From assembly GCA_029953675.1 (NCBI GenBank), contig JAMWBK010000008.1:1116001-1180000 (forward strand): DNA of 64,000 nucleotides, given 5' to 3'. This DNA is from Rhodosorus marinus CCMP1338. Lineage: Eukaryota; Plantae; Rhodophyta. Under the pieces are notes generated by a model, which searched no databases, was not told the origin of the DNA, and worked only from the letters and a program-made list of their open reading frames with translations. Of this stretch, positions 5,471 to 54,507 are shown piece by piece; the stretch's first letter is position 1; every line of letters begins with the position of its first letter. Made by a program: the position numbers and the translations under genes.

Positions 5471-5850
5471 CTTTTTTCGAGGACAGAATTAAGGGGACAG
5501 TTGGCAAGTGTTTCGTTGCTGCACTTGGGCTTTCAGGTTGTTGACCAATACCGTGCCATTCGTATACAAGTCCGGTTGAAGTACGCTGGATTAGGTTTTG
5601 AGGCTCGGTTCACGAGCATTGTCTTCCGTTTTTTTGTTTCGGGTTGAATTGGTGAAAATCGGCATCGACCATCGGAATCCATGTGATAATCGATTCCAGT
5701 GGACTGGATTTGAAGGTCCGTTCTTTTTTCTCCAGCCAGACTTGGGAAGGGTGCCTAGCGTTGCCCTGGGCGTTTATCATTGCTCTTCATTTTCTGGAGA
5801 TCGTTCGGGTCGGGTTTGTGAAGATCGTACCTGTGCGGGCTTTGAGAAAG

Positions 5851-7512
5851 ATGGACGCTGAGTTTGGGGATAGAGTTCAGTGCGAAGTGACTTCAAAGTT
5901 GAAGAGCTCCTGGATATCGACTGGGTCCCAACTGCTTGCATCGGTTTCGGTTCGCATCGGAACTGGCAGTGTTTCAGAAAGTGCGAGTGATGTGACGAGT
6001 GCGAGACCTGCGTCTTTGTTGAGCGCAGGGTCTAGGGGTGGATATTCTGCACAGTTTAATGTAAAGAGGTGCGTTGTCGATGATACCTACTTCGAGGAGC
6101 AGGAGCTTGGGAGGAGTGAAGTCGGAGCAAACGAAGAAAACAAAGCCGATGAAAGCCGGAGAAGAAAACGGCTGGCTGAGTTTACTCAGAAGCAAGGCAT
6201 GGTGAAGCTGAGCTATATTGTATGCGAAGTATCGGGACGATGGATTTGTGACAGTGCCTGGGTAGCTCAAGATGCACACGAATCCTCCAAAGAGCTCGAA
6301 GACATTGGTAGGTATGGCGACGTACCCTGGGCTGGAGCTCTTGACGACGCCTCCCACTACGGCGGTGGCGGCAAGAGGGGCTACTCCGGATTCATTTTTC
6401 GATCAAAGCCGCACATCATCGCGACCGAGGAGAAAGTTCTTTCTGGATCGCAGACAATCTATGACGTATCCTGCGAGTTTCCGGAGACATTGCCTCCATC
6501 ATTACGGGGAACCGCCGTTCGATACTCCTATGCTCTCGCGATCGTGGTCTCTTTTGACTCCTGTACACCGAAATCGTTGAGAATACCAATTCGAGTAGTC
6601 TTGTCATCTCCGCCCGCGGATGAGATTATTCCTGTGCCGTACACCAAACCTGAGGAGCCGGAAAGAAGCCAGTTTCAATCGAAATGTGGTCCCACAGACC
6701 CATTGACGATGAGATCTCATTCACTCGCTTCACTTCCTCCTCACGATGTGGATCTAGCCCTCGCTCTCTCCGTGAACGGCAGATTAACACCGTACCGCTC
6801 GGACAATGAGATTGGAGCGGCTGAGGACCTCCTGTCAGATCAGGAATCGCTCATGATGAGCTTTCGGCCGCAGCAAGCAGGAGCACGATTTCAGAACGGT
6901 GGAGTAGAAGTGGGAACTGCGAGCCCAAGCGTTCGGACTCTGGATTCCGTGCAGGAGCCCCGCTCTGCGCGTGATACGCTCCCCGTCTACGTGCTGAAGA
7001 AGGGCAATAAGAAGATTGGGAGACTTTTTCTTCCGAAAACTGTGCATGAGCTTGGAGAAACTTTAACTGCGATATTCGACTTTTCCGAAGGAGAAATCCC
7101 ATGCTACCGGCTGATCGCGTCCTTGGAAATGAAAGAGATCGTCAATCCTGCGTACGCCCTGGGAAGTAAAGATCGACCTGCAAAAAGTGACGAATACGGG
7201 AGGACGTTTAAGAAGGTTTACGGTGAGCATAGCGAGTATGTGAGTCAAGCCCTTAACACTTACTTGGTCCTTTCAATACCGAGGGACGCTGCGGTCTGTT
7301 TCCAAACGAGCGCTGTGAAGGTGATGTGGGAGCTGATTTTCGCGTTCTACACACCTAGCGATGAAAGAATTGAACAAGAGTCCACCTCACGTACCGATGA
7401 ATCGTGGTACATACCGGAAAAGGAAACCGAGGTTCTTAACTGGACCCTACCGCTGGACGTTGTTGGCCCATCAGGGGACCCCTCGGAGAAAAGAGCACAA
7501 GTTATGTCCTAA
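5851..7512 (+). CDS. RGP1: Rgp1-family protein (Ric1-Rgp1 Rab6/Ypt6 GEF subunit)
   Basis: Long ORF with the first plausible ATG at 5851. Motifs YDVSCEFPETLPPSLRGTAVRYSYALAI, FQTSAVKVMWELIFAF and VLNWTLPLDV match the Rgp1 pattern (LPPSFRG..RYSY; LxWxLxFEF; FxWDLPI). Confidence 0.8.
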   Translation: MDAEFGDRVQCEVTSKLKSSWISTGSQLLASVSVRIGTGSVSESASDVTSARPASLLSAGSRGGYSAQFNVKRCVVDDTYFEEQELGRSEVGANEENKADESRRRKRLAEFTQKQGMVKLSYIVCEVSGRWICDSAWVAQDAHESSKELEDIGRYGDVPWAGALDDASHYGGGGKRGYSGFIFRSKPHIIATEEKVLSGSQTIYDVSCEFPETLPPSLRGTAVRYSYALAIVVSFDSCTPKSLRIPIRVVLSSPPADEIIPVPYTKPEEPERSQFQSKCGPTDPLTMRSHSLASLPPHDVDLALALSVNGRLTPYRSDNEIGAAEDLLSDQESLMMSFRPQQAGARFQNGGVEVGTASPSVRTLDSVQEPRSARDTLPVYVLKKGNKKIGRLFLPKTVHELGETLTAIFDFSEGEIPCYRLIASLEMKEIVNPAYALGSKDRPAKSDEYGRTFKKVYGEHSEYVSQALNTYLVLSIPRDAAVCFQTSAVKVMWELIFAFYTPSDERIEQESTSRTDESWYIPEKETEVLNWTLPLDVVGPSGDPSEKRAQVMS

Positions 7513-9317: not shown

Positions 9318-12300
9318 ATGGAGGGATTAGCGTTTGGGTTTACCGCGGCGGCATCGGGTCGGGATTTGTTGAAGCCTACCTCGGGGTTTAGGATGACTGG
9401 ACGATGGCCTGCATCCTCCTTATCGAGGCGGGGATCTCGTGTGATTATGGTCACGAGTGTTCCTGTGTCCGTTGAGAGTAGTCTTTCCTCCACAGGGAAG
9501 GACCCAGTTTCCGACTATGTGGAGAGCCGGAAGGGGGGCAAGGTGATTCGCAGGATTCTGATCGCCAACAATGGAATGGCTGCAACGAAGGCTATTCTTT
9601 CTATTCGAAAGTGGGCTTATACTGAACTCGGGGACGATCGTGCGATTGAGTTTATCGCAATGGCAACTCCTGAGGACTTGAACGCAAACGCAGAGTTCAT
9701 CCGCCTAGCCGATGCGTTTGTTGAGGTCCCGGGGGGGACGAACAGGAACAATTACGCCAACGTCAATCTGATCGTGGATACTGCGCTCGCGCAGAACGTT
9801 GACGCAGTGTGGCCTGGATGGGGGCATGCAAGTGAAAATCCGAAGCTTCCAAATACCCTGAAAGAGAACGGAATCAAATTCATAGGTCCCCCGGGCCCAG
9901 TCATGAGCGTACTCGGCGACAAAATCGCGGCGAACATTCTGGCGCAGACCGCTGAGGTGCCGAGCATTCCCTGGAGTGGTACGGGACTGACAGCTGAGCT
10001 GCAGGAGGATGGGACCATTCCGGACGAGACTTTCAACAAGGCCTGCGTTACTACTGAGGAAGAGGCGATCGAGGCGTCGAAGGGGATAGGCTTTCCGATA
10101 ATGATCAAAGCATCGGAGGGCGGAGGTGGAAAGGGTATCAGAATGGTTGCGAATGAGGATGAGCTTCGTGCAAACTTCACACAAGTGCAAAACGAAGTAC
10201 CGGGCTCACCAATCTTCATGATGCAGCTTTGCAAGAACGCGAGACATTTGGAAGTGCAGATTGTTGGTGACGAGCACGGCAACACGGTTGCGTTGAATGG
10301 CAGGGACTGCTCAACCCAGAGACGGTTCCAGAAGATCTTTGAGGAAGGACCTCCGGTTATTGCAAAGCGGGAGACTTTCCGAGAAATGGAGAAGGCTGCG
10401 CAGCGACTGACTCACTCCATTGGCTATGTTGGCGCTGGAACAGTGGAATACCTCTATAACGCAGAAAGTGACACATACTGCTTTTTGGAGTTGAACCCTA
10501 GATTGCAGGTGAGCAGGACTCCATTGCTGACAAAGTCCATCTGATTCCTCTACAAGTTGATTGCCTTGAGGAGAAAAAAAAACTCGTGAGGAGGTAGCTT
10601 GAACTTAAGAGGACTTCCTGTTTGCAATTTTCCTAGGTTGAGCATCCGGTAACAGAGGGACTGACTGGTGTGAACCTCCCCGCAACTCAACTTCAAATTG
10701 CCATGGGGATTCCACTCTACAACATTCCTGATCTCCGAGAGTTCTTTGGCCAAGACCGCTACGGGCTTTCCGAAATTGATTTCTTCAAAACTGAGTACAC
10801 TGAAATTGACCGCCACGTCATTGCAGCCAGAATCACCGCCGAGAATCCGGATGACGGGTTCAAGCCGACCTCTGGGCGGATCGAGCGCGTCCGATTCCAA
10901 TCATCTCCGAACGTTTGGGGCTATTTTTCCGTTGGTGCCCGGGGAGGAATCCACGAATTTGCGGATTCGCAATTCGGCCATATCTTCGCCACAGGTAGTA
11001 CACGAAACGAAGCTAGGAAAGCGCTGGTTCTCGCGTTGAAGGAAGTGGAGGTGAGGGGCCCCCGGTTTTTCTTGCTTTCAGTCTCTCTGACCCGTCACCG
11101 GTAGTCCTGAGTTACTCATCTCTTCCCAATCCGGACCGTCCTTGTAGGCTCGTGGAGATATCCGAAACCCTGTGGATTATCTAGTACAGCTCCTTGAAAC
11201 GGACTCCTTCAAGAACAACGATATCGATACGTCGTGGCTTGATAAGCTGATCAAGGAGAAGACCGTTAATGTAGAACCAGACACAGAGCAAGTAGTTCTC
11301 GCAGCAGTGATCTATCGGGCTTTCTCCTATGTGCAGCGAGTTCTCAAAAAATTTGAGGCCAGTCTTGAAAAGGGACAAACGGCTTCCGCAGTTGAGATCG
11401 CTGGTATCAACCGTTTTCCTATTGACATTGCGTACAAGGGCGTGAAATACAACTTCGGCGTAGTTCGAGCGGGACCGGAGCGATTGGTTCTCACGATTGG
11501 CAAGCAGCAAATTGAGACCTCCGTCCGTGAGCAGCCCGATGGCAGCCTGCTGGCAACTTATGGAGGTGTTGCACGGAACGTGAATGGTTTGGAGGAGCCG
11601 CTCGGTCTGAGAATTACGCTCGACGGCCAGACAGTTCTTATTCCGAATGTGTTTGATCCTTCGGAACTTCGTTCCGATGTCAACGGAAAGGTGGTGCGGT
11701 TCTTGAAGGAAGACGGGGACGATATCCAGCAAGGGGAGCCCTACGTAGAAGTTGAATCTATGAAGATGATCATGCAACTGTCAGCGGCTGAGAGTGGAAA
11801 GTTTACTGGGAAGCTGAGCGCGGGATCGGTAATCAAGACGGGTGATATGCTCGGCAGTCTTCAATTGAAGGATGCGAGCAAGGTAAAGAAAATTGTCCCA
11901 TTCGAAGGAGAGTTTGACGAGAGCTGGTCTAAGTACTCGACCAAACGCGCACCGAAGGACGACTTGATGTTGGTGATGGATGGCTACGATCAGGACTTCG
12001 ACGAATCTGTTCAAAGATTGTTCAAGACCCAAAACATTGAGGAAGCCGGTGACGACATAAACCAGCTGATGACCAAGTACGTGGAGGTGGAAGAAATTTT
12101 CTCAGGAAAGCCTTTCGATCAGGCACTGTCAGGGCTGATCACGGCTCGGAAGGATGACTTGAAGCCGGTCAGACAGATTACCATCTCGCATTTGCAGAAA
12201 GGGAGGTCGATTCTGGTCCGGTCCCTTATTCGACAGCTGTTTACCTATCACGAAACATATACCTCTTTCCAGTGTCCGACTGCCCTCGAGAACACTCTTC

Positions 12301-15300
12301 ATCGACTTACGGCACTGTCCGGGAAGGAGCTCAGCAAAGTATCAGCGGCAGCCAAGGAGCTGCTGATCGAGTTTAGGGTTCCCAACAACGAAGCCCGTTT
12401 GGCGTTGCTGCGGACGTTTATTACGCAGGATAAGCCGATTAAGGAACTCGCTAGGTCCCGACAGCTGTCCCTCTCCGTAGATCTGCTTTGCGAACTGTTC
12501 TTCGACAAGGACGAGAGCGTGCGAAAAGCTGCGATGGAGGTCTACAGCCGAAGAGTCTCCTTCTTGCACAAAGTTCAGGACTTCAAGATCAGCGAAGGCT
12601 CCGATGGACAGACGCTAGCCACGTTCCAATTCAACTACATGGATTACGTGGACGAGAATGCAGAACCAGTGGAGAGGCTTGGTGCGCTTACAACGATTCC
12701 ACTTTTCTCTCAGTTGGAGGGGGGACTGGACAATTCGCTTGACAATTTCCAAAAGGAGCTCGGATCGAGGAAGGAACCGGATGCCCTTTCAAACTTGCTC
12801 ACGCTAACCATTGAGAAGATGGATAGCGAAGTATCAGATGACGAGATTATCCCCAAGCTCGAGGGGATACTGAGACAAAGGCAGGCCTTGATGCGTGAAC
12901 TTGGAATTCGCACTGTGACCTTGATCATCTTGCAGCAGGAAACTGCACGACCTCGGTACTACACCTTTGAAGAATGTCTCAACTACGGAGAGAACGATCT
13001 AAGGAGGAATATGCGGTCAACTGCGTACTACATCCTTGAGCTCAAATCCTTGCTCAGCGGATACGAGATTAAAAGGCTACCTGCTGTTTCGCGCAATGCT
13101 CAGTTGTGGTTGGGCACGGAAGCTGTGGATTCTGATGTGTCTGTGTCAAGACCACGCAGTCAGCGAGTGTTTTTCAGAGGCTTTTCCCTATCTGATGTGA
13201 CGATTGATGGCGTTGCTGAAAAGATCCTCATGACGGCTATGGACGAGCTCGAGCGAGCGCTAATCCTTCCGGATGTAGCTGCAACGGCTTCATCATCTAT
13301 CTTCCTTCACTTCATCGTACCATTTACGAGTACGACTACAGATCTGATCTTCAAACTACGGAATCTGTTCCGGAACCTGATTCCAAAGCACTCTGAGCGT
13401 CTCCTCAAGTACAAGGTGGACGAAATCGACGTAAAGATTCGAGCAAATTTTGAGAATGACAAGGCGGTTCCGATCCGACTGGTGGCCTCGAGCAGCACTG
13501 GAGAATGGCTGAAGCCTGAAGTCTACCTGGAGGACAACGACCCAGTTACGGGAGTTACTGAATCGTTCAGGTCCTTTGAGCAACTGGAGACCGGAAGCAT
13601 GACTGTTTCGCCCTATCTTTCAAGCAATATCCTTCAGATGAAGCGCGCATCTGCGAGACGCGTTGGTTCAACATACGTCTACGACTTCATTGGTCTGTTT
13701 GAAATGTCCGTGAAGAAGTCTTGGCAGCAGTTCCCAGGCCTGGAGATGCCGGAAGATTCCATTTTGGAAGCCGAAGAACTTGTCCTCAACTTCGAGACAG
13801 ATCAGCTCGAACTCGTGAAACGGCCTCCTGGTGCGAATGATGTTGGCATGGTTGCATGGCTTCTCAAGCTGAAGACTCCGGAGTACCCTGAAGGACGCGA
13901 AGTTGTAGTAGTTGCGAACGACGTCACCTTCCAAGCAGGTTCGTTTGGAGTTCGCGAAGACGATGTTTTCTTCAAGGCCTCGGAGTTTGCGAGAGAGCGG
14001 GGAATCCCCCGAGTGTATTTGGCGTGCAACTCTGGAGCTCGGATTGGGCTTGATTCGAAACTGAAGAGTAAGTTCAAGGTCCAGTTCAAGGACGACTCCA
14101 AACCGTCCCTTGGCTTCGAGTATCTGTACCTCACTGACGAGGACTACCAGGAGATGAAGCCAGACGAAGCAAATGCCCACGCGATGACTGTAGACGGCGA
14201 GACAAGATGGGTGTTCGATGACATTATCGGTTCGGTCCATGGTATTGGAGTTGAGAATCTCCGCGGGAGTGGAAAAATAGCTGGAGAAACGAGCCGCGCT
14301 TACGATGATGTGTTCACTCTCAGCTATGTCACTGGAAGAACCGTTGGGATTGGTGCGTACCTTGTGCGACTCGGACAGCGCACGATTCAAATGTCGAATG
14401 GGCCTATCATTCTTACCGGGTACGTGGCCTTGAACAAGCTCCTCGGCAAGGACGTTTACACTACCCAGGATCAACTCGGAGGACCCCAAATCATGTCTCC
14501 CAATGGTGTGAGTCATTTGGTCGTTTCCAGCGACCAAGAGGGAGTTGAGGAAATTCTGAGATGGCTTTCCGTTGTTCCAAAGACAAAATCATCTATTGCG
14601 CCGATGCTTGCTCCGGAGCTTGTTGACCCCGTTGATCGTGAGATCGATTTTGTCCCAACGAAGACACCCTATGATCCAAGGCATATGCTGGCTGGGGTCG
14701 AGGGAGACGATGGTACCTTCCTCTCGGGCTTTTTCGACAAAGGAACGTTCAAAGAATACTTGCCACACTGGGGTAAAAGTGTGGTTGTTGGTCGTGCGCG
14801 ACTGGGCGGTATTCCGTTTGGTGTAATATCCATTGAGACCAGGTCTGTCGATAGGCGTATTCCCGCGGATCCTGGAAATGAAGAGTCACGTGAGGTTGTG
14901 GAGGCTCAGGCGGGTCAAGTATGGTTTCCGGACTCCGCGTACAAGACGGCTCAAGCTCTTGAAGATTTCAACCGAGGAGAGAATTTGCCGGTCATGATCT
15001 TCGCGAATTGGAGAGGTTTCTCGGGAGGTACTCGGGACATGTTTGGAGAAATTCTGAAGTATGGATCGATGATCGTTGATGCGCTACGAAACTACAAGCA
15101 ACCAGTATTTATCTACTTGCCTCCGAACGCCGAACTTCGTGGTGGAGCGTGGGTGGTGGTTGACCCTACTATAAACGAGGAGATGATGGAGATGTATGCG
15201 GACGTGGAAAGTCGTGGAGGAATTCTGGAGCCTCCAGGTATCTGCGAGGTAAGTACCCTGGCCGCCCTGTGGATGCGATTGGAGGTCAAAAAGGGGGTCA

Positions 15301-16053
15301 CAAGGGAAGGATAGTTGTATTTAAATATAGAACTTTTTTTGGAATTCGTCTAGGTCAAATTCCGTGACAAGGAGCAGAAGCAGACGATGCACAGACTCGA
15401 CGACGAGCTCATCCGTTTGGATGCGCAGCTCAAGTCTACAGACTCGGCTGGCGAGCGGGAACAGATCAACGAGCAAATAGCGAACAGGGAGAAGCAACTG
15501 GCTCCCGTCTATCTTCAAATCGCGCACGAGTTTGCTGATCTGCATGATCGCGCAGGGAGGATGAAGGCCAAGGGAGTGATTTCTGATGCGCTCTCGTGGA
15601 AGAGGTGCGTATTTGACCGCCGTCGGATTCAAAGTACCGCGTCCTGAACCATGCTTTGCTCTTTGCGCAGTTCTCGAAAGTTCTTCTACTGGAGGGCAAA
15701 GAGACGAATCTTGGAGCATTCTGCACGAAAAGATCTCCAGGTGGCGAACACTTGTCTGTCGTGGTTGGAGACTGAGACTCTGGTCAAGTCCGTCTGTCCA
15801 GCTGAGTGGTCTGACAACACGGCTGTAGCAACGTGGTTTGAGGAAAATCCAGAGGCCCTGGCCCTGCTGATATCTCAGCAAACGGTAAGCCGCACCTTGT
15901 CGCCCAAAGTATATCTCACCACCCATGGAAAGCCTGACATATTATTTATCTTCGCCCTCCCTCCAGCTGGTTTGCGCTCAAAACTTGCTGAAGGCGAAGC
16001 TAGAAAAGCTTTCCCCTGAGCAGCAGGAGGCGCTGAAGAAAAGCATATGCTAG
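9318..16053 (+). CDS. ACC1: Homomeric (multidomain BC-BCCP-CT) acetyl-CoA carboxylase with an N-terminal plastid transit-like peptide, about 2085 aa, 6 exons (9318-10508, 10637-11050, 11148-15248, 15354-15604, 15671-15884, 15967-16053)
   Basis: BC motifs [23 protein letters not shown] and FLELNPRLQ|VEHPVTE; biotinyl motif EVESMKM; CT motifs [33 protein letters not shown] and NWRGFSGG. Exon lengths sum to 6258 nt (in frame) with GT-AG introns. Confidence 0.97.
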
Positions 16054-18536: not shown

Positions 18537-21500
18537 TTAAACTCGATGGGATGGGGAGCCTCTTAAGTGAATGCCATTTGGACGCGGCGACCCAGACGGA
18601 TGACCCTCTCTTATCCCCATCCCATTCACCGGTGGTGGTGGAGGCGGAGGCGGTGGCGGTGGCGGAGGGGGAGGCGGAGGAGGCGGTGGTACAACGTGCC
18701 TCTGCCCCATTGTGACAGGGTTAGACACGTGTCCCCTTGAATCTCGTGAAAACATCTGCGGGGGGGACGATACAGCACCATACGGCATGCTCTCTCCGAA
18801 GTTGCCCTTCACGTGCGAACCGGTATAGTAGTTCGGGTTCCCGTAAGAAGGGTTCATCGGGCTTGACCTCCGCTTCTCAAACATCGAGTCCATCCCACGT
18901 TGAAACTGCTCACGCTTGGGCGGGTACCTCACATCCCTCGCACCTCTCAGGCTATGCTTCTCAGGATACCTCGGTCGGGGGCTGTAGATAGGGGTTTCCG
19001 TTCCATTCCACGACGGACGAAAATTGTTGGGGATCATCTGCGGAGAGGGTTGGGAGTTGTAATACAACCTAGGACTCGACATGAATTCGTTTGGAGGGGT
19101 TCCTTGCCTCGTGGGCGGGACCTCCGGTTGCGATTCAGAAGCGGGGGTTCCTGCTTGGGATTGCTGAGACTGAAGAAAGCTCTGCATCCTCATTTTCACA
19201 ACGTCTTGATAGGAAGTATACGAGTCCACGCCTTTCGGATCCCCAGACGCGTCATCAGATGCTTTCGGCTCCTTCCGCCGCTTTGGAGGGCTTAGCTCTC
19301 CTACTCTCAGCGACGCCGAAGCGACCGTCGCTGGTGAGCCAGCTCGTGAATTGCCCGTTTCCGCCACAAGGTTCTTCATCATGCTCGAGTCTTGAGCCGC
19401 TGCATTTACATCAACAGTAAACTGCAAGCGTTTGACCCCCAGCCGCTCCAGCTGCTCTAGCTGCTCTGACCTGGGCGACGCAACGCTCCGACTTTCCGTC
19501 AGTGCAGGACTTTCTCTCGATTTTCGTGGTATAACGATGTCGTCCACTGGCACCGAGTATAGGTCAGAACCAACTCCGTCGTCTCCATCGACTCCAGCAC
19601 CCTTCGAATTTTTGCTCGACGAGTCCAGCCCGATTTTCACCTCTTCCCTCGGAGATCTCGCTGCACCAAGACCTGATGCCGCTGAATCACGAGACTTCAT
19701 CCTCGGTGACCGAGAATGTCCGTCCCCATTGACCCCAATCGCGTCAGGACCTCTGCTCTCTAGGTCACTCGTTTGCTTCTTAAGTGCTCCACCTTCTCCA
19801 TCAGGTCCTGCGGACATTCGCCTGACTGGAAGATCCTCGTCACTGGCGCCAATCCCTAAGCTCTTGTCGTTGAGGGGAGAGGCTTGCTGCCTGTCTATGC
19901 CGGTTATGGGCACTGTATCAGGGGGCGGGGCGGGCCTCTTCTTCCGAATGACTAGATCTTGGATTTGATTCTCTTTCGGAGTCAAATCTTCGCTTATCTT
20001 AGCAACTGATGCTCGTGGGGGTGGCTTTGGGGGCCCTTCGTTCATCCCCTCAGCTTCCACAGGCAATGTCGCAGCTGGACGCCAATCAATCTTTTCCTCC
20101 AGTTCCTGCTCACTTGGAAGGTCCTCGTTGCTTAATAACTTCCTCGACTTTCCCTTGGCCATCGGGCTACGGGAAGTCACTGCATCCCACCGATTTGCAA
20201 CTTTGACAGTTCCAGATTGCTCATTAATAATGTCTTCATACGCTGGTTCCAGTTTAGGCTCTGTCTTCTTCCCTTCATCTTCAGCACAGGCAGGAGATGT
20301 GGGGCTGTCCTTTACGTTCGGTTCGTCATCAGCCTTGTCATCTCCGTTCTTATCGATACTGTTGGTGGGTGTCAGCTGAAGAAGCGGAAGTTCATACTCA
20401 GAGACGGGGCTAGGAGTCTTCGACCCGGACATGCCCGCTGGACTGCTAGACGACGGGTGCACGAGGCCGAGGGAATACTTCTTTCTCCACGGTAGTCCAG
20501 GTTTTGACCTCACCGACGACCCGTTCCTGTCCTTGAAGGTTCTTCCCATACTCCATTCCCTTGCGGTCCAAGTAGACTCCTTGCTGTGTTTTCCGCCCTG
20601 TAAATATGGAGCTTGGAGCTTGCTGCCGACTACCGACGGTCCTGGCACGAAAAAATTCCCGCTGCAGTCTTGAGCAACCCTTAAAATTGCCAGGGTGGCG
20701 TCAATTGCACGCTCTCGCTTTCGATCAGGATCCCGACCAGTTCTGGTGCGCTTGCTCCGCTCCTTTTCCCTGTTCAGTCTTCTTCTGGCCTTCCCATTTT
20801 CTAGAGATACACAGTTGCTAGTCTCGTTCTCCCGAGAAACGTCCACTCCCACCTTCCCATCAGAGAACGAATTCTGCCTGCAAACAACTCCTTCGTTCCT
20901 GTCAACGCCAGGGCTTGAGGCCTCATCTTCTTGGACTCTCTCAGAAACCCTTGGAGAATCTTTAAGGAGGCCGTCCTTCGCTCTGTGCTGCGGAGATTCT
21001 TCAGGTCGAGATTTCTTCTTCTTGCGTTCTTCAATTTTCTGGAAGAGTTCGTAGTACTGTCTTGCTTTCTTCTCCTCCCTGGACATTCTGCTGAAGTCCC
21101 CACTGGAATTCGCTCCATATTTGCTCTGTTCTGTAATTGCGGGTGAATCTTTAACCGCTTTTCTAGCAGATGGTGATTTCAACCCTCTGGACGCAAGGGA
21201 CGGGGTTCGCGGACGCTTTATAGAACTTGCCGTTGAGCCGTCTAGGCTATCTCTCCGTCCGAGCTCGAACGATTCAGTCGGCGACCCCGAGATGCTTTGC
21301 GGCGACTTTAAGCCCTTCCTGGGCGTCGATAGTCTCTGCGCGTTGACTACTTGCGGCCTTTCCTGCCCTGAGTGGCCGTCGAGTTCACTCGTCGACGAAT
21401 CAAGTCTCTCGCTCACATCCGATCTGCTCATCCCGGTCAGAAGAGAAAGTCCACAGACAACACTCTGCCTGTCCTTGCTGAAGCGGCTTTTGTAACGATG

Positions 21501-22417
21501 CGCATAAACGCGGAATAATTCGTCCACATCCACCACATCCTTCTTCCGCTTCTCTCTCAAGTCCGCCGCAAAAAGTCTTCGGAGTTCAATCGGTTTGATC
21601 CGAGCGAGCACGATTTCACCTTCTTTTGTCCTGAATTCTTTCAGAAGTTTCTTCTCTTTGAATTGAGGATGTGCGAGACACTGTTTCCTCATCAGGTCTG
21701 GCCGACATTCATGACAGAAATACACATCGGGGGCATCCTCCTCTCGTCGGAAGCCCATGCATTTCCCGTGTTGCCAAGTTTTACATTTCTCGCAAGCAAT
21801 CATCCAGTCAGTCGATTCCGAGTCAGCTACGTTGCAAGGGCACCTCGTCGGAGCATCTGCAAATTCGTCGCTATCCGAATTTTCTGCGCCTACATTGTCG
21901 CTTCCACTCCCCATGTGATCCAAACAGTGTAGTCCGTCTTCCTTCTGCGCTTCATCCTCTATTTCCTCTGGTTCTGCGACTTTCTCAATTTGAAGGAGAG
22001 ATATAGGCTTCTCCTTCCCAATTCTCGAGTCCGCAGTACCGTCACCAATAGTGGTTTTGCTTCTTGCCCGTTTCATCGTGGTCTTGGGGCCTCTAGAATT
22101 CGAACTCGGTTCTAAGTTCGTACACACAAGAGAAGGCAACGTTGTCAGACCGAGGTGGACCATAGCTGCGACTCTTATTTAGCGGGGTTACCTTTTCTTT
22201 CGGAGGACTCTTTCAGACATATTTTCCTCTCCTTGTCGTTGCCATGATCCCGAATCCTCAGGTCTGGCTGATCAAGTGTGCCTCCCAGGCCGTTAACGTC
22301 AACGCCGTTAGCCCTTTTAACCGCTCCTTTGCTCATCTTCGTAGCGGACATCTCCCCAAGAGATTCCACCAGGTTCCTGCTTCGTATTTCACCCTCAATC
22401 ATGGACGGCGAATTCAT
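18537..22417 (-). CDS. Large PHD-finger chromatin protein (SET3/BYE1/DIDO-like PHD) with a long disordered C-terminus
   Basis: 1208-codon ORF containing TRCPCNV...WMIACEKCKTWQHGKCMGF...YFCHECRPD (C4HC3). A probable upstream exon (MNSPSMIEG...SSERK, ATG at 22417) joins in frame via a GTAACC...TTAG intron. Confidence 0.85.
18631..18690 (-). repeat. Coding poly-proline tract (20 x CCN)
   Basis: The plus strand reads (GGN)20, which is P20 near the C-terminus of the PHD protein. Confidence 0.9.
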
Positions 22418-24994: not shown

Positions 24995-26041
24995 TTAGCC
25001 AGTCCCTACGACAGACCAGCTGAGCAGCTCACCAGCTTTCATTGGAGTGAGGTACTCTTCACTGTTCTCGATTGCGATCCTTCTTGGTACCTCCTTAGGC
25101 GTCTTCTTGAGCGAAAGCGAGCCATGGTTAAGCTCCAGCCCATAAAACCTCGCACCGTTCTCAGATAGAAAGGGCTCAAGTTGCTCCATCGCGTCCATCT
25201 CATCAAAAGCTTCTGCATACAGCTCCACCGCCGCTGCCGCGGAAAAGACACCAGCAGCGCCCCCGATCTTGTCGCATTGCGGATGAGGGGCTGAATCCGT
25301 CCCCGCGAAGAAGCGACGCGAGCCCGACTTGACGGCGCTGCGAATTGCCTCCCGATCATCGCGGGTTTTCAAAATTGGTAGACAGAATAAGTCCATGTGA
25401 AGCTTTGAGTTCTTGAAAAGGGCGCTTCTATCAAAGCACAAGTGCTGAGGTGTTACGGTAGCCGAAATGTTATCAGAAGGGTGACTCAGAACATATTCCA
25501 CAGCCTCCTTCGTGGATACGTGCTCAACCACAACTTTCAGTTTCGGGTAAGTAGATGTAATACGCACGAGGACGCTTCTCACAAACTCTCTCTCGCGGTC
25601 AAACATGTCTTCGCGAACGTCAGGAGTGACTTCACCATGCACGCACAAAATGATGCCTAATTGTTCCATTGCGTCAAGGGCCTTCGAAATTTTGTCCAAC
25701 GATGTCACCCCAGAGGCAGAGTTGGTAGTGACTCCGGCTGGATACAGCTTGCAGGCCTTGACAATTCCTGAATTTGCTGCGTCTCTGATCATTTCCGGTG
25801 TCGTGTTATCTGTCAAGTACAATGTCATGATCAAGTCCACTCCGGGAACAGCTTTTAGGATACGATCCCGGTACTGTTTGGCATCCTCCACAGTAACAAC
25901 GGGAGGTTTCAAATTCGGCATCACCAGAATCCGCCCAAACTGTGCCGCCGAGAGCGGCGCTACAGTTTTTAGGACGTTCCCATCACGCAAATGAACATGG
26001 AAATCGTCTGGTTTTCGAATCGTGAGCGATTGACCTTCCAT
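24995..26041 (-). CDS. pyrC: Dihydroorotase, type II (homodimeric, E. coli PyrC/plant-like), intronless, 348 aa
   Basis: DDFHVHLRDG, VMPNLKPP, LYLTDNT, KLYPAGVTTNS, LCVHGE, EHVST, CLPILK and FAGTDSAPH. Confidence 0.97.
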   Translation of the reverse strand: MEGQSLTIRKPDDFHVHLRDGNVLKTVAPLSAAQFGRILVMPNLKPPVVTVEDAKQYRDRILKAVPGVDLIMTLYLTDNTTPEMIRDAANSGIVKACKLYPAGVTTNSASGVTSLDKISKALDAMEQLGIILCVHGEVTPDVREDMFDREREFVRSVLVRITSTYPKLKVVVEHVSTKEAVEYVLSHPSDNISATVTPQHLCFDRSALFKNSKLHMDLFCLPILKTRDDREAIRSAVKSGSRRFFAGTDSAPHPQCDKIGGAAGVFSAAAAVELYAEAFDEMDAMEQLEPFLSENGARFYGLELNHGSLSLKKTPKEVPRRIAIENSEEYLTPMKAGELLSWSVVGTG

Positions 26042-26172: not shown

Positions 26173-27150
26173 TCAGCTATGCTTGACGTTGGTACCCCAG
26201 TCATATGCGAGCCAGCGTACAGGAAGAGACCTTTTTCGGGCCTCTTGTAAGCTCGACCTTTTTGAACTATCCTCTGGAAGGTTGCAGATGACCCAATCCA
26301 GGGTTTCACTTGGGAAATCACTGGAATACCAACTGAAAATTTGACTGAGCTGAACACAATCTTGTTGCGCGACGACGTTGTCGTTGGAAAGTAGGTATGC
26401 CGTCGTTACCATTTCTAGCATATCCTCCACGCTCTTCGCGGTGAAGAAGCGAATTGGTGGGCAGCTGATTGCGCCACAGTTCAGCGCGAAGTGAATACGA
26501 GGATCCATTGGTATCAGTACAGACGAGAGTCGTTTGTCGCCGTCTTTGAAAGGTTTGGACTTGATCACATCGAACGGCGATGGTCGGTTTTCCCGCAGAA
26601 CTCCATTTTCGATATCATGAAGGGAGTACAGGAGACCACCAATTTCATACTTTGCGTTCACGTTGAGAGCTATTCTGCTCGCAGTATTGGACGAAGGCCC
26701 ATCCAAAGCGATAGAATGTAATGTCAGAATATTGTACACGTTGAGGAAGAAAGCAAGTTTCTGAGTGTGGCTGAACGCCCCGGGATCGACCTTCTTTAGA
26801 GCGCTTGTCAGAAACACAAAGTCCACAAACTCCTCACTGTCCTTCATGCCCGCATAGTCCACTCGAGAGCCGTCATCTGCAACGAATTTGCCGATCAGCC
26901 GCTTGGCTTGCTTCTGCTCATACAAGGCAACAAAAGCCGACAAAAGGCGGTCTGGTGTTGGTGACTCAAACGCACACTTTCGGAGCGATACAGATATTTA
27001 TATTCTAGCCAAGAGTCGAGGAAATACCTGCAATTCTTCCGCAACCTCTCCGCCGTCGAGGCGCTGAAACTGGGAGGACTCGCTCTCCGTTCCATTGTTG
27101 AGCACTGATACTCTCCAATACATTGTTCTCAGCAATTCCTCGAGTTGGTG
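26173..27150 (-). CDS. DUF547-domain protein; the 5' exon(s) are approximate
   Basis: ORF 26943-26173 has VDYAGM, KLAFFLNVYNILTLH, SLHDIENGVLR, DPRIHFALNCGAISCPPIR, LSQIFSWYSSDF and YDW. The upstream coding-like exon ends ...GGEVAEELQ|GTATTT. Confidence 0.85.
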
Positions 27151-43846: not shown

Positions 43847-45722
43847 TCAGTACGTAGATTCTTGAAAGTCTTCCATCCTCTGTGCAAAAGCATCCATGTC
43901 GGTACCTTGCGGAAGCGAGTTCAACGGCGGGAGGTTATCCTCTACGTCCAGGTCCAGGAAGTTGGGTAAAGCATCTCCCACCTCGTCGGGCTTTACGGTA
44001 CCATCCCAGTCTGCGGGACCTGAGTCTTTGCGAACAAGAAACGCAGGAGTTTTAGCCTTCATTCTCTTGGTGGAAGCGTACAGGCAAAGTCTTTGTACTA
44101 CATACCATCGAACAGCACTGTTTCAAAACCGTTCTCCGTCGGTTGATGGACGAGCTGCCCCATTGACGGACTTTGCACGTCTGTAAACTCTTCGACCTCG
44201 TCCATTGAGCCCCGCATAGAGGGCATTCTCACAGGTGCGATTCGCTTCGCTGACTTCGGCGTCTCGTAAGAATTTACTCTTCTTCGTTTGCTGCCTGGCA
44301 TACTGACGTTGCTCAGCTGACGTTCCGAAGAACCTTCCGAGGTCTTCGTCACCGAATCTCCAGTAGATAGTTCTTGAACAAGCGCTGGTGGAAAGTTGCT
44401 AGGCGTCTGCTGAACGCCAAGGATTAATGGGGTATTGCCTGAAGGGAGAAATTTCCACGAAAGGGGAGGGAAGGATTGGTGAGCAAGAAATTGCGTCCCC
44501 GCCATTTCACATCGGGATTGGCTTGACGCAATTTGAAAACCTCCGTTTCGAACAGATTGGTTTGCGACAAGCATACTCTCGCGTCTTCCAGTTTTTTCTT
44601 CCGGGAGAATAGGGTCAGCCAAGAACGGAGTCGCTCCAGTGGATCCTCCTGATAAGGCGCCAAACATATTTGGCATCTCGTCGTCGGAACCGGATGAGCC
44701 CGGCTGATCATTAACTTGATCGCCCGCGGCAGTTCCACTACCACCACCCTCTTGTAGGTCGTCCGCTGAGGCTGGTGCTGGGAGCCTTCTACGCCTTGAC
44801 TTCCCTGATCGACCTATTCGAGTTAAAGTGTTCAACGATTTCATCAGTCCCTCTGAGAGGTCAGGTGCAAGTGAACCAGCTTTGTTTTCGCTTCCTTACC
44901 ATAGTTCTTCAGAACCGGCTGGAAGTAGTAATAGAGAAACTGCTGCATTTTCTTCATGTTTGCTTCGAGCCGCTCTATCCTCTTTTCGTGTATCTCGCAA
45001 TTGTGTTTCAGCTGGGTTTCCTGCTTGCGGTATATCCCAAGCTGTTTCCTTGTACCCATCAGCTCCTTGAGGAGCGTGTCGCGATCTCGCTGCAATCGAT
45101 CAACTTCTCCAAGAATACCACCGTAGTTGCCCAGCTCGAGTATAAGTTTTTGGTTGTCTGGGTTGTTCTCTCTGCCCGGCAACAACTGCATCATGTTGGC
45201 ATTTGGGGCAGTTTGTAGTTGATTCTTAGGCTTTTTCCGTGTAATGTCCACCAGCAAGTCTGGCCTTCCTCGTTGAAAGCTTTCATGTCCAAATGTCCAG
45301 TTGTCCGGGTCCTGCTTGTGAAACCCGTACTGATTAAGCTGCCTTACGAAAGAGCTGAAATTATTGTGCTTAAAATACTTCGGCAGCACGTCTCGCTCGA
45401 ACTGCGTTGTCTTGTGAACCGTAAAAATTCTTCCATCGGGGCTCCAGCTCACCAACTCATTCGTTCTTGGATCATCGACAAGGTCGTACAGTTTCGTAAG
45501 AAAAGGTGGGGGTCCCTGGTTTCCAATCATAGCATGTCCACGACTAGATTGTTGTGAAGGGCCACCTTCAGTACCAGACGGAGCGTTCCCGCTGAGCCCA
45601 ACGGGCTCCTGCACAACGGTCCCGGACAGAGCATTTTGCTGGCCGTTCTCTTGCGGCATCATGGGATTGGGAAAAGGTCCATGGCCCAGTCCGGGACCGT
45701 TCGGGGGACCCCGATTATTCAT
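43847..45722 (-). CDS. HSF: Heat shock transcription factor, 3 exons
   Basis: DBD PPPFLTKLYDLVDD...LPKYFKHNNFSSFVRQLNQYGFHK, HR-A/B coiled coil, basic NLS RRRRLP and an acidic/aromatic C-terminus. Joined by GTAAGG...CTCAG and GTATGT...CAAAG introns. Confidence 0.93.
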
Positions 45723-46199
45723 TCTCAACTTTGTCCCAAAGTCCAGGTACGCTGCCGACTGCAACAACGAACGAAAGACAAACTGAACGCCTCTCTCTCC
45801 CACACAATCTCGCAACAAACTCCCCTCCGCTCGATCTGAGCACCACACACGAATGGACAACTACCGCCAGAAAACGGGGATCCTCTTCTACAATAAGCAA
45901 GCAACACAATTTGCGGAACCCAAACACCCAAGTCAACAGAACCCGAGCTCCTCCAAACAACTTTTTCAACTCTGAAACCGAGCTCTTCAGATTCCACTCT
46001 GCGCTCCTGCTGCTTCCTCAAGCTCCTCCCCCCGCTTGCATCTTTGTGTTTACTATCTCAAGTCCACATATGTGGATATGAACCAATGCCAGATTACCAG
46101 GAGCAACATTGGGAGTGAATGATATGGGCTCTTCCTGTGAGCCTTTGTATTCAATACAACGGTAGACAGCAAGAGCGTTTTACTTTCACGGCTGAGCTA

Positions 46200-52185: not shown

Positions 52186-54507
52186 ATGGCGTTTGTGCCT
52201 TCGTTATGGACTGGTTTGAGGGTCGATGCGGAAAGTATCATGGTAAGCAGACGGCGAGGAAACGCCTCCAATCTGAAAGGGATAAGATGTAGGATGGAGT
52301 CAGCTGAACCTGCAGTAGAGACGGAGGAAGTCAACTCGGATCCGAAGGGTGAGTGATAAATTGATCCGCTGCTGACGCAGTGTACTGACCAAACAGACCC
52401 GCGGCAGGGGATCTGTACCCTGTTTTGAAACGCCCATACGGGATCCAGCTGGGGTACAGTTAAGCTGATCAGCATTCGATGAACCGCGCAATCACTCAGG
52501 ACTTGTGAGAATAAAGCGCGTGCTTGTGTCGGTTTCTGATAAAACCAGTATCGTGAACTTGTGTCAATTCCTTACTGGCATCGGAGTGGAAGTCATTTCT
52601 ACTGGCGGATCAGCGAAAATCTTGATGGAGAACGGCGTCGCAGTAACAGAGGTGACGTGAAATCGCGCTAGAAGCGATCAGTTGACTGAGATGACTTCCT
52701 CTCGAAGGACGATGAGTCTATCCCAACTATCGTTTTGGAGCATTTTGCACTAACCACTTTCAATTAACCCCTCCATCTCAATCCGCAGGTGTCTGACTAT
52801 ACGCAGTTTCCGGAGTTGCTGGATGGAAGGTTGAAAACTCTCAATCCGAAAATCCACGGGGGGCTGTTGGGAATTCGCGGGAACGAGGAGCACCTGCAGG
52901 CGATGGCCGAGCACGGGATATTGCCTATCGATGCGTGCGTTGTAAACCTGTATCCTTTTGAAGAGACTGTAAACTCAGGCGAAGACTTTGGAACGTGCGT
53001 GGAGAACATTGACGTTGGTGGTCCAGCAATGATTCGAGCTGCCGCGAAGAATTTTAAGTCTGTTACCGTGGTCACTGAAGTGGACCAGTACGCGGAGCTG
53101 CTAACTGAGCTTGCAGAGAACGACGGATGTACAACGCTCGCGCTTCGGGAGAAATACGCGGGAGCAGCTTACGCGAGGACGGCAGTTTATGACGCAAATA
53201 TAGCGAGCTGGTTCTCTATGCAGGGAGAAGAGCACTTTCCGGAAAGACTGGTTATCAGCGGCATACTCAAGCAGAGGCTTAGGTACGGGGAAAATCCCCA
53301 CCAGGTACGGTTTGCTCCTTTGGACGATGTGCTAGCCAGAACGCGTGATCAGCCGAAGAGTATCATGTTCTCATTCCGTGGCTGCTTGATCAAATCGTCA
53401 TCCTTTTCTGTGTCGGTTGACAGAGAGCAGCCTTCTACGTTTCGGATGGTCCAAAGAGGCTTGGGGCGGCGACTTCGGAGATCATTCAGGGAAAGGAGCT
53501 AAGCTACAATAACATTGCTGACACAGATGCTGCGTGGGAGTTAGTTTGTGAGTTCAACGAGCCCGCAGTTGCAATAATCAAGCACGCGAACCCTTGCGGC
53601 GCAGCTGTTGGAGTTAACCCGATGGATGCCTACATAAGGGCTCTCGCGTGCGACCCAATATCGGCGTTTGGCGGAATAGTCGCGTTCAACAGGACACTAG
53701 ACAAGGACGCTGCCGAGGAAGTTATCAAAACTTTCACCGAAGTAGTGATTGCTCCAGATTCCACGGCGGAGGCTCTACAAGTGCTCAGCCAGAAAAAGAA
53801 CTTGCGAGTATTGTTGACTGGTGGTATTCCTGCAGACGAGCCGGGCTGGACAGTGAAGTCTGTAGCGAGCGGATACCTCGTCCAAGATCGCGATGCTGGA
53901 AGCGTCACGGAAGCACAGCTACAGATTGTCACAAAGCGTGCGCCGACGGCCCAGGAGATAACTGATATGCTGTTCGCGTGGAAAGTGAGCTTCAGCAGTT
54001 CCGCAGCGCTCACATTTTGGTTTGGTCGTGTTCCTCATGATATGGCGTTTTTTGATGTCGGTTTTTGATACTGTTTCTTTAGGTTTGCAAATACGTCAAG
54101 TCAAACGCGATCGTATTTGCAAAGGATGGATCCACTGTAGGCCAAGGGGCCGGTCAGATGAGCCGCGTGGATTCCGCTCGTATAGCAGCACTGAAGGCGA
54201 AGGAGACTTCTGAAGCAGCTCAGGTATGGATTCGCCTCGGGTTAGGTCACGTGGAAGTAGCATTCGTACATACTGACCTGTGGGGCTCTTTGAGGGGATG
54301 CAGGAGGAAGAAGTAAGAACCAAAGGATCTGTCGCAGCATCAGATGCTTTCTTTCCTTTCCCGGACGGTGTGGAAGTTTGTGCGGATGCTGGAGCGACTG
54401 CGATCATCCAACCTGGGGGCTCGAAGAGGGATGAGGAGGTTATTGCAGCGGCCGATGCACGGGGAATGACCATGGTTTTCACAGAAATGCGTCACTTCAG
54501 ACATTAG
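52186..54507 (+). CDS. purH: Bifunctional AICAR transformylase/IMP cyclohydrolase with an N-terminal plastid transit peptide, 6 exons
   Basis: MAFVPSLW... transit-like exon, then [93 protein letters not shown] and RHFRH*. Confidence 0.96.

Follow-up and report, generated by a model that had tools for sequence, protein, structure and literature searches.

A plastid-type homomeric acetyl-CoA carboxylase with a transit-peptide-like leader in the red alga Rhodosorus marinus

This report concerns a 64,000-nucleotide stretch of DNA from the red alga Rhodosorus marinus CCMP1338 (the window; contig JAMWBK010000008.1, positions 1,116,001 to 1,180,000 of the forward strand), which carries a single gene for a complete homomeric acetyl-CoA carboxylase (ACC). 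Primary plastids, except those of grasses and prasinophytes, are held to use a heteromeric, bacterial-type ACC (Huerlimann et al., 2015); its homomeric counterpart in the plastids of diatoms, haptophytes, cryptophytes and apicomplexans has been credited to a prasinophyte-like source and has become a flagship "green gene" (PMC3881603). Here, a red alga possesses an ACC of the complex-plastid type that begins with a transit-peptide-like leader, sits beside a normal cytosolic ACC, and occurs in a subphylum whose plastomes are listed without accA, accB and accD. Judging from these sequence comparisons, we think it probable that the enzyme is imported into the plastid, has replaced the heteromeric enzyme there, and makes plastid malonyl-CoA.

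Gene, protein and host

Joining the long open reading frames (ORFs) of the forward strand at canonical GT-AG sites gives a gene of 6736 nt with five introns of 128, 97, 105, 66 and 82 nt and a coding sequence of 6258 nt, which specifies 2085 residues plus the stop codon (Table 1). Over its entire length the product matches KAJ8902898.1, "hypothetical protein NDN08_006218 [Rhodosorus marinus]" (P0001), with 100% identity, and the gene maps to positions 1,125,318-1,132,053 of the 2,117,290-bp contig JAMWBK010000008.1 of GCA_029953675.1, the R. marinus CCMP1338 nuclear genome, whose published description does not discuss ACC (Lee et al., 2023; PMC10250338). The host is a primary-plastid red alga (class Stylonematophyceae), which an earlier note, made from the letters of the window alone, could only surmise.

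Since a TAG lies in frame upstream, the ATG at 9318, the first one downstream of it, is the first possible start. Transcripts from another R. marinus strain in MMETSP (P0122, 2085 aa, and P0125) have the same leader and the same first Met, and three MMETSP variants read through introns 3, 4 and 5, respectively (P0127, P0124 and P0123), thereby confirming these introns. All five introns and the first ATG are supported by transcripts; the gene is expressed and its model is correct. The last three introns (15249-15353, 15605-15670 and 15885-15966) are thus represented by retention isoforms assembled beside the fully spliced mRNA, each of which would truncate the C-terminal tail beyond the carboxyltransferase (CT) domain. 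G+C content is uniform over the window, and contamination or misassembly is ruled out by the 2.1-Mb nuclear contig, by neighbours of equal G+C, and by spliceosomal introns confirmed in the transcripts of the other strain.

The protein contains, all above the gathering cut-off, the Pfam domains Biotin_carb_N, CPSase_L_D2 (ATP-grasp), Biotin_carb_C, ACCA_BT, Biotin_lipoyl, ACC_central and Carboxyl_trans, in this order, so that the complete multidomain enzyme of about 2085 residues read by the earlier note at this locus is borne out. The Carboxyl_trans match (PF01039) is especially strong (E = 5.7e-156) and covers profile positions 1-493 of 493. Homology to the yeast (5csk) and human (6g2d) ACC holoenzyme structures extends over residues 60-2050, and the biotin carboxylase (BC) domains in the PDB align to residues 60-582. 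Based on the sequence, the catalytic features are intact, namely the expected biotinyl-Lys within MKM, the glycine-rich ATP-grasp loop of the BC region, and the CT domain.

Table 1. Features of the ACC gene, in coordinates of the window
Feature	Position	Strand	Basis or remark
Whole gene, start to stop codon	9318..16053	+	Spliced model; plastid-type homomeric ACC, 2085 aa
In-frame TAG 5' of the start codon	9294..9296	+	Sequence reading
Exon 1	9318..10508	+	Spliced model; GTGAGC donor
Exon 2	10637..11050	+	Spliced model
Exon 3	11148..15248	+	Spliced model; intron 3 kept in transcript P0127
Exon 4	15354..15604	+	Spliced model; intron 4 kept in transcript P0124
Exon 5	15671..15884	+	Spliced model; intron 5 kept in transcript P0123
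Exon 6, including the stop codon	15967..16053	+	Spliced model
Leader, residues 1 to ~59, putative red-algal-type plastid transit peptide	9318..9494	+	Composition; homology starts at residue 60
Internal Met44 (MVTS...), possible alternative start	9447..9449	+	N-terminal comparison
BC region, residues 77-567, across introns 1 and 2	9546..11243	+	Pfam PF00289, PF02786, PF02785
Biotinyl (biotin carboxyl carrier protein, BCCP) domain, residues 715-771	11685..11855	+	Pfam PF00364
Lys741 of VESMKMIM, expected biotin attachment site	11763..11765	+	Motif alignment
ACC central region, residues 839-1346	12057..13580	+	Pfam PF08326; holds the clade-specific LSxxVDLLxxLF block
CT domain, residues 1446-1999, across introns 3 and 4	13878..15710	+	Pfam PF01039; yeast and human CT structures

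Two kinds of ACC in one red alga

The nearest match to the protein is a Rhodosorus-like sequence (74% identity), followed by cryptophyte proteins (56-59%; clusters with Guillardia theta, Hanusia phi, Rhodomonas and Teleaulax), by ochrophytes (53-56%; Tribonema, Vaucheria, brown algae, Triparma and many diatoms), and then by "ACC 2" from the rhodophyte Porphyridium purpureum (53%), Bigelowiella and Vitrella. Its placement was examined in neighbor-joining (NJ) trees, all relationships reported here coming from distance methods only: a broad tree of 129 near-full-length sequences and 1488 columns, drawn from 150 HMMER representatives of ACC diversity, and a curated tree of 76 taxa and 1895 columns, calculated with Kimura distances, with two gamma corrections, and with the N- and C-terminal halves separately. 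In the broad tree the protein falls into a long-stemmed clade with 100% bootstrap, and in the curated tree it lies inside a 36-sequence plastid-type clade with 100% bootstrap in all five analyses. The members of this clade include Toxoplasma gondii ACC1, chromerids (Vitrella), dinoflagellates, pelagophytes, cryptophytes, ochrophytes and Bigelowiella. T. gondii ACC1 is reportedly the apicoplast enzyme. Nearly all full-length ochrophyte and cryptophyte members begin with a signal peptide, and an ASAFAP-like Phe motif comes next; together these form the bipartite plastid-targeting signal of complex plastids.

Sequence motifs tell the same story. The protein has YVEVESMKM at residue 734 and the central-region motif at residue 969, which correspond to the two motifs, YVEVExMKM and LAxxRQLSxxVDLLxxLF, from which the earlier note had assigned it to the plastid rather than the cytosolic clade; both are specific to the plastid-type clade, and the assignment stands. 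In the motif alignment, E-[A/S]-MKMIM is present in 36/36 members of that clade and the LSxxVDLLxxLF block is confined to it, whereas nearly every sequence of the cytosolic clades shows E-V-MKM-[Y/C/V], with Galdieria (E-A-MKM-Y) and a few unnamed sequences as exceptions, and MKMIM occurs in none of them.

The deeper branches of the clade are dinoflagellates (Amphidinium ACC1a and Durusdinium), Oxyrrhis and pelagophytes, as identified by cluster look-ups, which showed a reading of these basal branches as prasinophytes to be wrong. Cymbomonas P0219 joins the clade only weakly (19-42% bootstrap) and is at most a candidate prasinophyte plastid orthologue. Within the diatoms, Seminavis robusta has two plastid-type paralogues (P0065 and P0072), both with bipartite plastid leaders; their sister position at 100% bootstrap indicates a recent duplication of the plastid enzyme.

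A second ACC, which the earlier note had recommended looking for, was found with a profile built from three representatives that group near Cyanophora. The profile matched sequences of Galdieria (three species), Cyanidiococcus, Gracilariopsis and Gracilaria, Porphyridium purpureum P0407, and the R. marinus protein NDN08_006265 (P0405; 2279 aa). The gene for NDN08_006265 resides on the same chromosome-scale contig, JAMWBK010000008.1, at approximately 1,301,495-1,308,600 (locus L002:1501-8606), on the opposite strand and ~170 kb from the plastid-type gene, outside the window. NDN08_006265 groups with the cytosolic-type ACCs of Galdieria, Cyanidiococcus, Gracilariopsis and Porphyridium at 90-100% bootstrap, and the plastid-type protein is excluded from this clade with the same support; its identity to cytosolic-type ACCs, including NDN08_006265, is 36-49%. 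The N-terminus of NDN08_006265, MDAYEKYVTDRGGKRVIRKILIANNG (MDAYEKYV...), is leaderless, with 19 residues before the conserved ILIANNG as compared to 79 in the plastid-type protein. A member of this cytosolic clade from Cyanidioschyzon merolae, CMM188C (ACC1), is cytosolic as seen with a green fluorescent protein fusion (PMC4928187). Porphyridium purpureum has the same pair, "Acetyl-CoA carboxylase 2" (P0024) and a cytosolic-type "Acetyl-CoA carboxylase" (P0407), so that Rhodosorus and Porphyridium each possess one ACC of each type. NDN08_006265 rules out that the plastid-type enzyme is the only ACC of the genome, and the 36-49% identity and the different, strongly supported clades rule out a recent, grass-like duplicate of the host's cytosolic ACC.

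Compared to known systems, the Rhodosorus enzyme most resembles the complex-plastid and apicomplexan ACCs ("node E" of Huerlimann et al., 2015, with T. gondii ACC1, diatom ACC1 and the Guillardia theta plastid ACC), with which it shares the BC-BT-BCCP-central-CT order, the compact length of ~2050-2150 aa, the clade (100%), both E-[A/S]-MKMIM and LSxxVDLLxxLF, and 53-59% identity to cryptophyte and ochrophyte members. It differs from them in its leader, a simple putative transit peptide that lacks a signal peptide, in keeping with a Rhodosorus plastid that is primary and bounded by two membranes. Porphyridium ACC 2 belongs to the same clade, is likewise paired with a cytosolic-type enzyme, and comes from an alga whose plastome also lacks accA, accB and accD, but it represents another class (Porphyridiophyceae), is 53% identical and 2201 aa long, and has another leader sequence. 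The red-algal cytosolic ACCs (C. merolae CMM188C, Galdieria, Gracilariopsis and NDN08_006265) have the same family and domain order but form a separate clade (90-100%), are 2279-2640 aa long and leaderless, carry the EVMKMY-type biotin motif, and are 36-49% identical. The grass (Poaceae) plastid ACC and Arabidopsis ACC2 are analogous in combining a eukaryote-type ACC with a simple transit peptide in a primary plastid, the homomeric enzyme replacing the heteromeric one in grasses and being minor in Arabidopsis (PMC4489017); these, however, are recent duplicates of plant cytosolic ACC and lie in the plant cytosolic clade, whereas the Rhodosorus enzyme lies in the separate plastid-type clade. The heteromeric AccA/AccB/AccC/AccD enzyme catalyzes the same reaction in presumably the same compartment and role, that is, malonyl-CoA production for the plastid type II fatty-acid synthase (FAS), but consists of four subunits descended from cyanobacteria, and red algae encode three of these in the plastid.

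The leader and malonyl-CoA supply to the plastid

Residues 1 to ~59 have no counterpart in NDN08_006265 or in the solved BC domains. The first 43 residues have a net charge of +5, few acidic residues, and Phe at positions 6 and 8; Ser and Thr make up 21-27% of the leader (21% over residues 1-43). Its maximal 12-residue hydropathy is 1.16, as compared to 2.15-2.35 in the signal peptides of cryptophyte and diatom orthologues, and this low value argues that there is no endoplasmic reticulum signal. An early Phe is said to be a mark of rhodophyte and glaucophyte plastid transit peptides. The description in the earlier note of a transit-peptide-like leader with an early Phe and no signal peptide thus holds, as does the likeness it saw to PurH in the same window: the intron-split purH gene for AICAR transformylase/IMP cyclohydrolase (52186-54507, forward strand; Pfam MGS and AICARFT_IMPCHas) has a first exon that starts MAFVPSLW and resembles a red-algal transit peptide. 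A comparable in-frame leader, MERAAFGFAPAATKSLVAGAGRGFVLTRTKQNAVRRSARVSMVTS (MERAAFGFAPAA...RRSARVSMVTS), is present in the 74%-identical relative (P0128) and shares ME-x-x-AFGF and a basic tract with that of R. marinus. The first 25 nt of the coding sequence are nearly identical between the two, and the remaining leader diverges. Similar leaders are present in the red-algal homologues P0011 (...CAAFVGAP...) and P0024. We infer that the leader functions as a plastid-targeting sequence.

Near the end of the leader, a Met followed by V/T-A/T recurs in red-algal, cryptophyte and some ochrophyte orthologues (e.g., ...RVIMVTS, ...GLHMVAV, ...GLRMTAT, ...APTMVAA and ...PLRMVAT). This Met, Met44 in R. 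marinus, may be a processing site or an alternative initiation codon, and several deposited models (P0003, P0014, P0018, P0019 and P0139) start exactly at its equivalent. Two transcripts of the relative from JGI sample 3300016877 are otherwise identical and differ by a 25-nt segment in the leader (L001:66-119 as compared to L004:66-190). Without this segment, the first ATG of L001 opens a 17-codon upstream ORF (MERAAFGFAPAATVDSY*), and the main ORF runs from the Met44 equivalent. An alternative intron is ruled out as the cause, as the segment lacks GT-AG borders and is too short; the difference could reflect an allele, an artefact of assembly or a route to a leaderless isoform.

The plastid genomes provide the other side of the argument. 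C. merolae encodes AccA, AccB and AccD in its plastid genome and a plastid-targeted AccC in its nucleus (PMC4928187), and florideophyte and bangiophyte plastomes list accA, accB and accD. Table S4 of Lee et al. (2016; PMC5010701), which gives the contributing species per gene in a 48-species red-algal plastid data set, lists each of the three genes for 40/48 species, all Cyanidiophyceae, Bangiophyceae or Florideophyceae, and for 0/8 Proteorhodophytina, R. marinus (partial data) among them. All eight are listed under acpP, acsF and apcA-F. Five of the eight are represented by complete plastomes (Porphyridium purpureum, P. sordidum, Bangiopsis subsimplex, Erythrotrichia carnea and Rhodochaete parvula), and in P. 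sordidum plastid fabH is present as well (PMC5010701). On the strength of this published table, the Proteorhodophytina plastid retains a type II synthase but lacks plastid genes for ACC subunits, and the loss of these genes coincides with the red-algal group that holds the plastid-type homomeric ACC. The plastome check proposed by the earlier note therefore supports replacement. As far as a portion of the same table goes, argB has 0/8 Proteorhodophytina among the 36 species listed, and accA, accB and accD may be part of a wider plastid gene loss in this group (PMC5010701).

Taken together, we propose the following scheme. The plastid-type ACC would be translated in the cytosol from the ATG at 9318; its ~60-residue leader would act as a stromal transit peptide, carry it over the two plastid envelope membranes, and be cleaved near the conserved R-x-x-M-V/T site. 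The mature BC-BCCP-CT enzyme would then produce malonyl-CoA for the plastid type II FAS, acpP being still plastid-encoded in Rhodosorus, and would take over the job that is done in Cyanidiophyceae, Bangiophyceae and Florideophyceae by the heteromeric ACC (plastid accA, accB and accD plus nuclear accC), while the leaderless NDN08_006265 would supply cytosolic malonyl-CoA for elongation. We infer import, processing and sole responsibility for plastid malonyl-CoA from the evidence above, and several points weigh against them: the plastid data of Lee et al. (2016; PMC5010701) are partial for R. marinus, as for Rhodella maculata and R. violacea, and accA-D may have moved to the nucleus, so a heteromeric ACC could coexist with the homomeric one as in Arabidopsis; the 25-nt deletion in L001 closes the leader frame and makes a leaderless isoform conceivable; and a leader that is basic and hydroxylated might serve as a mitochondrial presequence as well.

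Could the enzyme instead be cytosolic or dually localized, with Met44 as the sole or a partial start of translation and the 43 codons upstream of it forming a 5' leader or an upstream ORF? Met44 aligns with a conserved Met of cryptophyte and ochrophyte orthologues at which several gene models begin, and transcript L001 of the relative, with its first ATG closed after 17 codons, reads its main ORF from the same position. Yet NDN08_006265 already gives the genome a dedicated ACC of the cytosolic type without a leader; the leader frame of the plastid-type gene stays open both in the genomic sequence and in every R. marinus transcript, and its protein sequence is conserved in the long isoform of the relative; and the ochrophyte Met-start models sit beside full bipartite-leader models and look like truncated annotations. 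We regard this explanation as unlikely. Still less probable, in our view, is a reading of the leader as a mitochondrial presequence, with the enzyme supplying a mitochondrial type II FAS in the manner of yeast Hfa1, despite the basic leader poor in acidic residues, which would also fit a presequence, and despite the existence of mitochondrial FAS in red algae (mtKAS and mtACP in C. merolae; PMC4928187). With plastid acpP kept and a plastome devoid of accA, accB and accD, it is the plastid that needs an imported ACC. Furthermore, wherever a member of the clade has been characterized or its location can be predicted, it is a plastid enzyme (Toxoplasma ACC1, and the ochrophyte and cryptophyte proteins with bipartite leaders), and the Phe near the N-terminus reportedly points to a plastid of the rhodophyte and glaucophyte kind. 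Relative to a plastid-imported enzyme, both alternatives are thus disfavored by the cytosolic paralogue, by the plastid location of the clade's other members, and by the plastome pattern. The earlier note had named in advance four findings that would tell against it, and the analysis returned the opposite on each: the host is a primary-plastid alga, the protein branches with the plastid-type ACCs, the leader begins at the first ATG after the in-frame stop, is present in transcripts and is conserved in P0128, and a separate cytosolic-type ACC exists.

Apart from the ACC and purH genes, the window contains long ORFs with matches to Rgp1 (5683-7512, forward strand) and, on the reverse strand, a PHD-finger protein (18537-22163), an amidohydrolase (24995-26041), a DUF547 protein (26173-26943) and an HSF-type DNA-binding protein (44844-45860). 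These are ordinary nuclear genes functionally unlinked to ACC.

Origin of the plastid-type enzyme

This kind of enzyme is already known, and its evolutionary implication, though under-explored, is not unheard of. The sampling of Huerlimann et al. (2015) included only two red algae, each represented by cytosolic ACCs, and led to the conclusion that the gene was acquired by horizontal gene transfer (HGT) from a relative of the prasinophytes. Chan et al. (2013; PMC3881603) noted in passing a Porphyridium homologue in the plastid ACC clade; the direction of transfer was not inferable, and a green (prasinophyte) source was favored. A literature search on Rhodosorus or Proteorhodophytina in combination with ACC found nothing relevant. 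Specifically, it found no paper that states a transit peptide on the red-algal copy or its coexistence with a canonical cytosolic ACC, and none that links this copy to the Proteorhodophytina-wide loss of plastid accA, accB and accD or reports the Rhodosorus copy.

Our trees, sampled without a named plastid ACC of the prasinophytes Ostreococcus or Micromonas, place the red sequences nested in the plastid-type clade, not at its base, and their inner branching order is unstable: red monophyly within the clade has 43-94% bootstrap in the curated analyses, and a grouping of reds with cryptophytes has 55-93% with all columns and 4% with the C-terminal half. The basal positions are occupied by long-branch alveolate and pelagophyte sequences, which renders the rooting suspect. 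By identity, cryptophytes are the closest non-red relatives (56-59% as compared to 53-56% for ochrophytes), and the SRxLSLSVD variant of the central motif is common to reds and cryptophytes; LSAGVDLL occurs mostly in ochrophytes, alveolates and Bigelowiella. The cryptophyte closeness and the shared variant would be expected if the gene was inherited from a red endosymbiont, but do not prove it.

It is tempting to consider, as a tentative proposal, that all red-derived complex plastids (those of cryptophytes, haptophytes, ochrophytes, chromerids and apicomplexans, and peridinin dinoflagellates) obtained their homomeric ACC through endosymbiotic gene transfer from a red alga in which the swap of enzymes had already taken place, and not from a prasinophyte. 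An opposite history is also possible, and we hold it with similar reserve: the red copies may not be ancestral, the ancestor of the Proteorhodophytina having gained the gene by HGT from a prasinophyte-like green alga or a cryptophyte-like secondary alga. Prasinophyte plastid ACCs have been placed in or beside the clade (Huerlimann et al., 2015; Chan et al., 2013; PMC3881603), the nested position and unstable order of the reds fit such a gain, and the gene is known among red algae only from Proteorhodophytina, the Cyanidiophyceae, Bangiophyceae and Florideophyceae keeping the heteromeric enzyme. On the other hand, the gene is present in two red classes, Stylonematophyceae and Porphyridiophyceae, and the plastid acc genes are missing from each of the four Proteorhodophytina classes covered by the 2016 table, which makes the event old. 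The affinity to cryptophytes, SRxLSLSVD included, would follow from red-endosymbiont inheritance, and the long-branch sequences at the base cast doubt on the rooting.

With the red-algal gene, its leader and its cytosolic counterpart in hand, a red-endosymbiont origin of the plastid ACC becomes directly testable. For red-algal lipid biology and biotechnology, the finding means that in Rhodosorus and Porphyridium, producers of eicosapentaenoic and arachidonic acids, the committed step of plastid fatty-acid synthesis likely depends on a single large nuclear gene. The enzyme further provides a discrete character with which the search for the red-algal donor lineage of the complex plastids can be narrowed. 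If a red donor is correct, the ACC swap together with the loss of plastid accA, accB and accD would constitute a rare genomic character, one that would place the red plastid donor on or near the Proteorhodophytina, the only red algae showing the swap.

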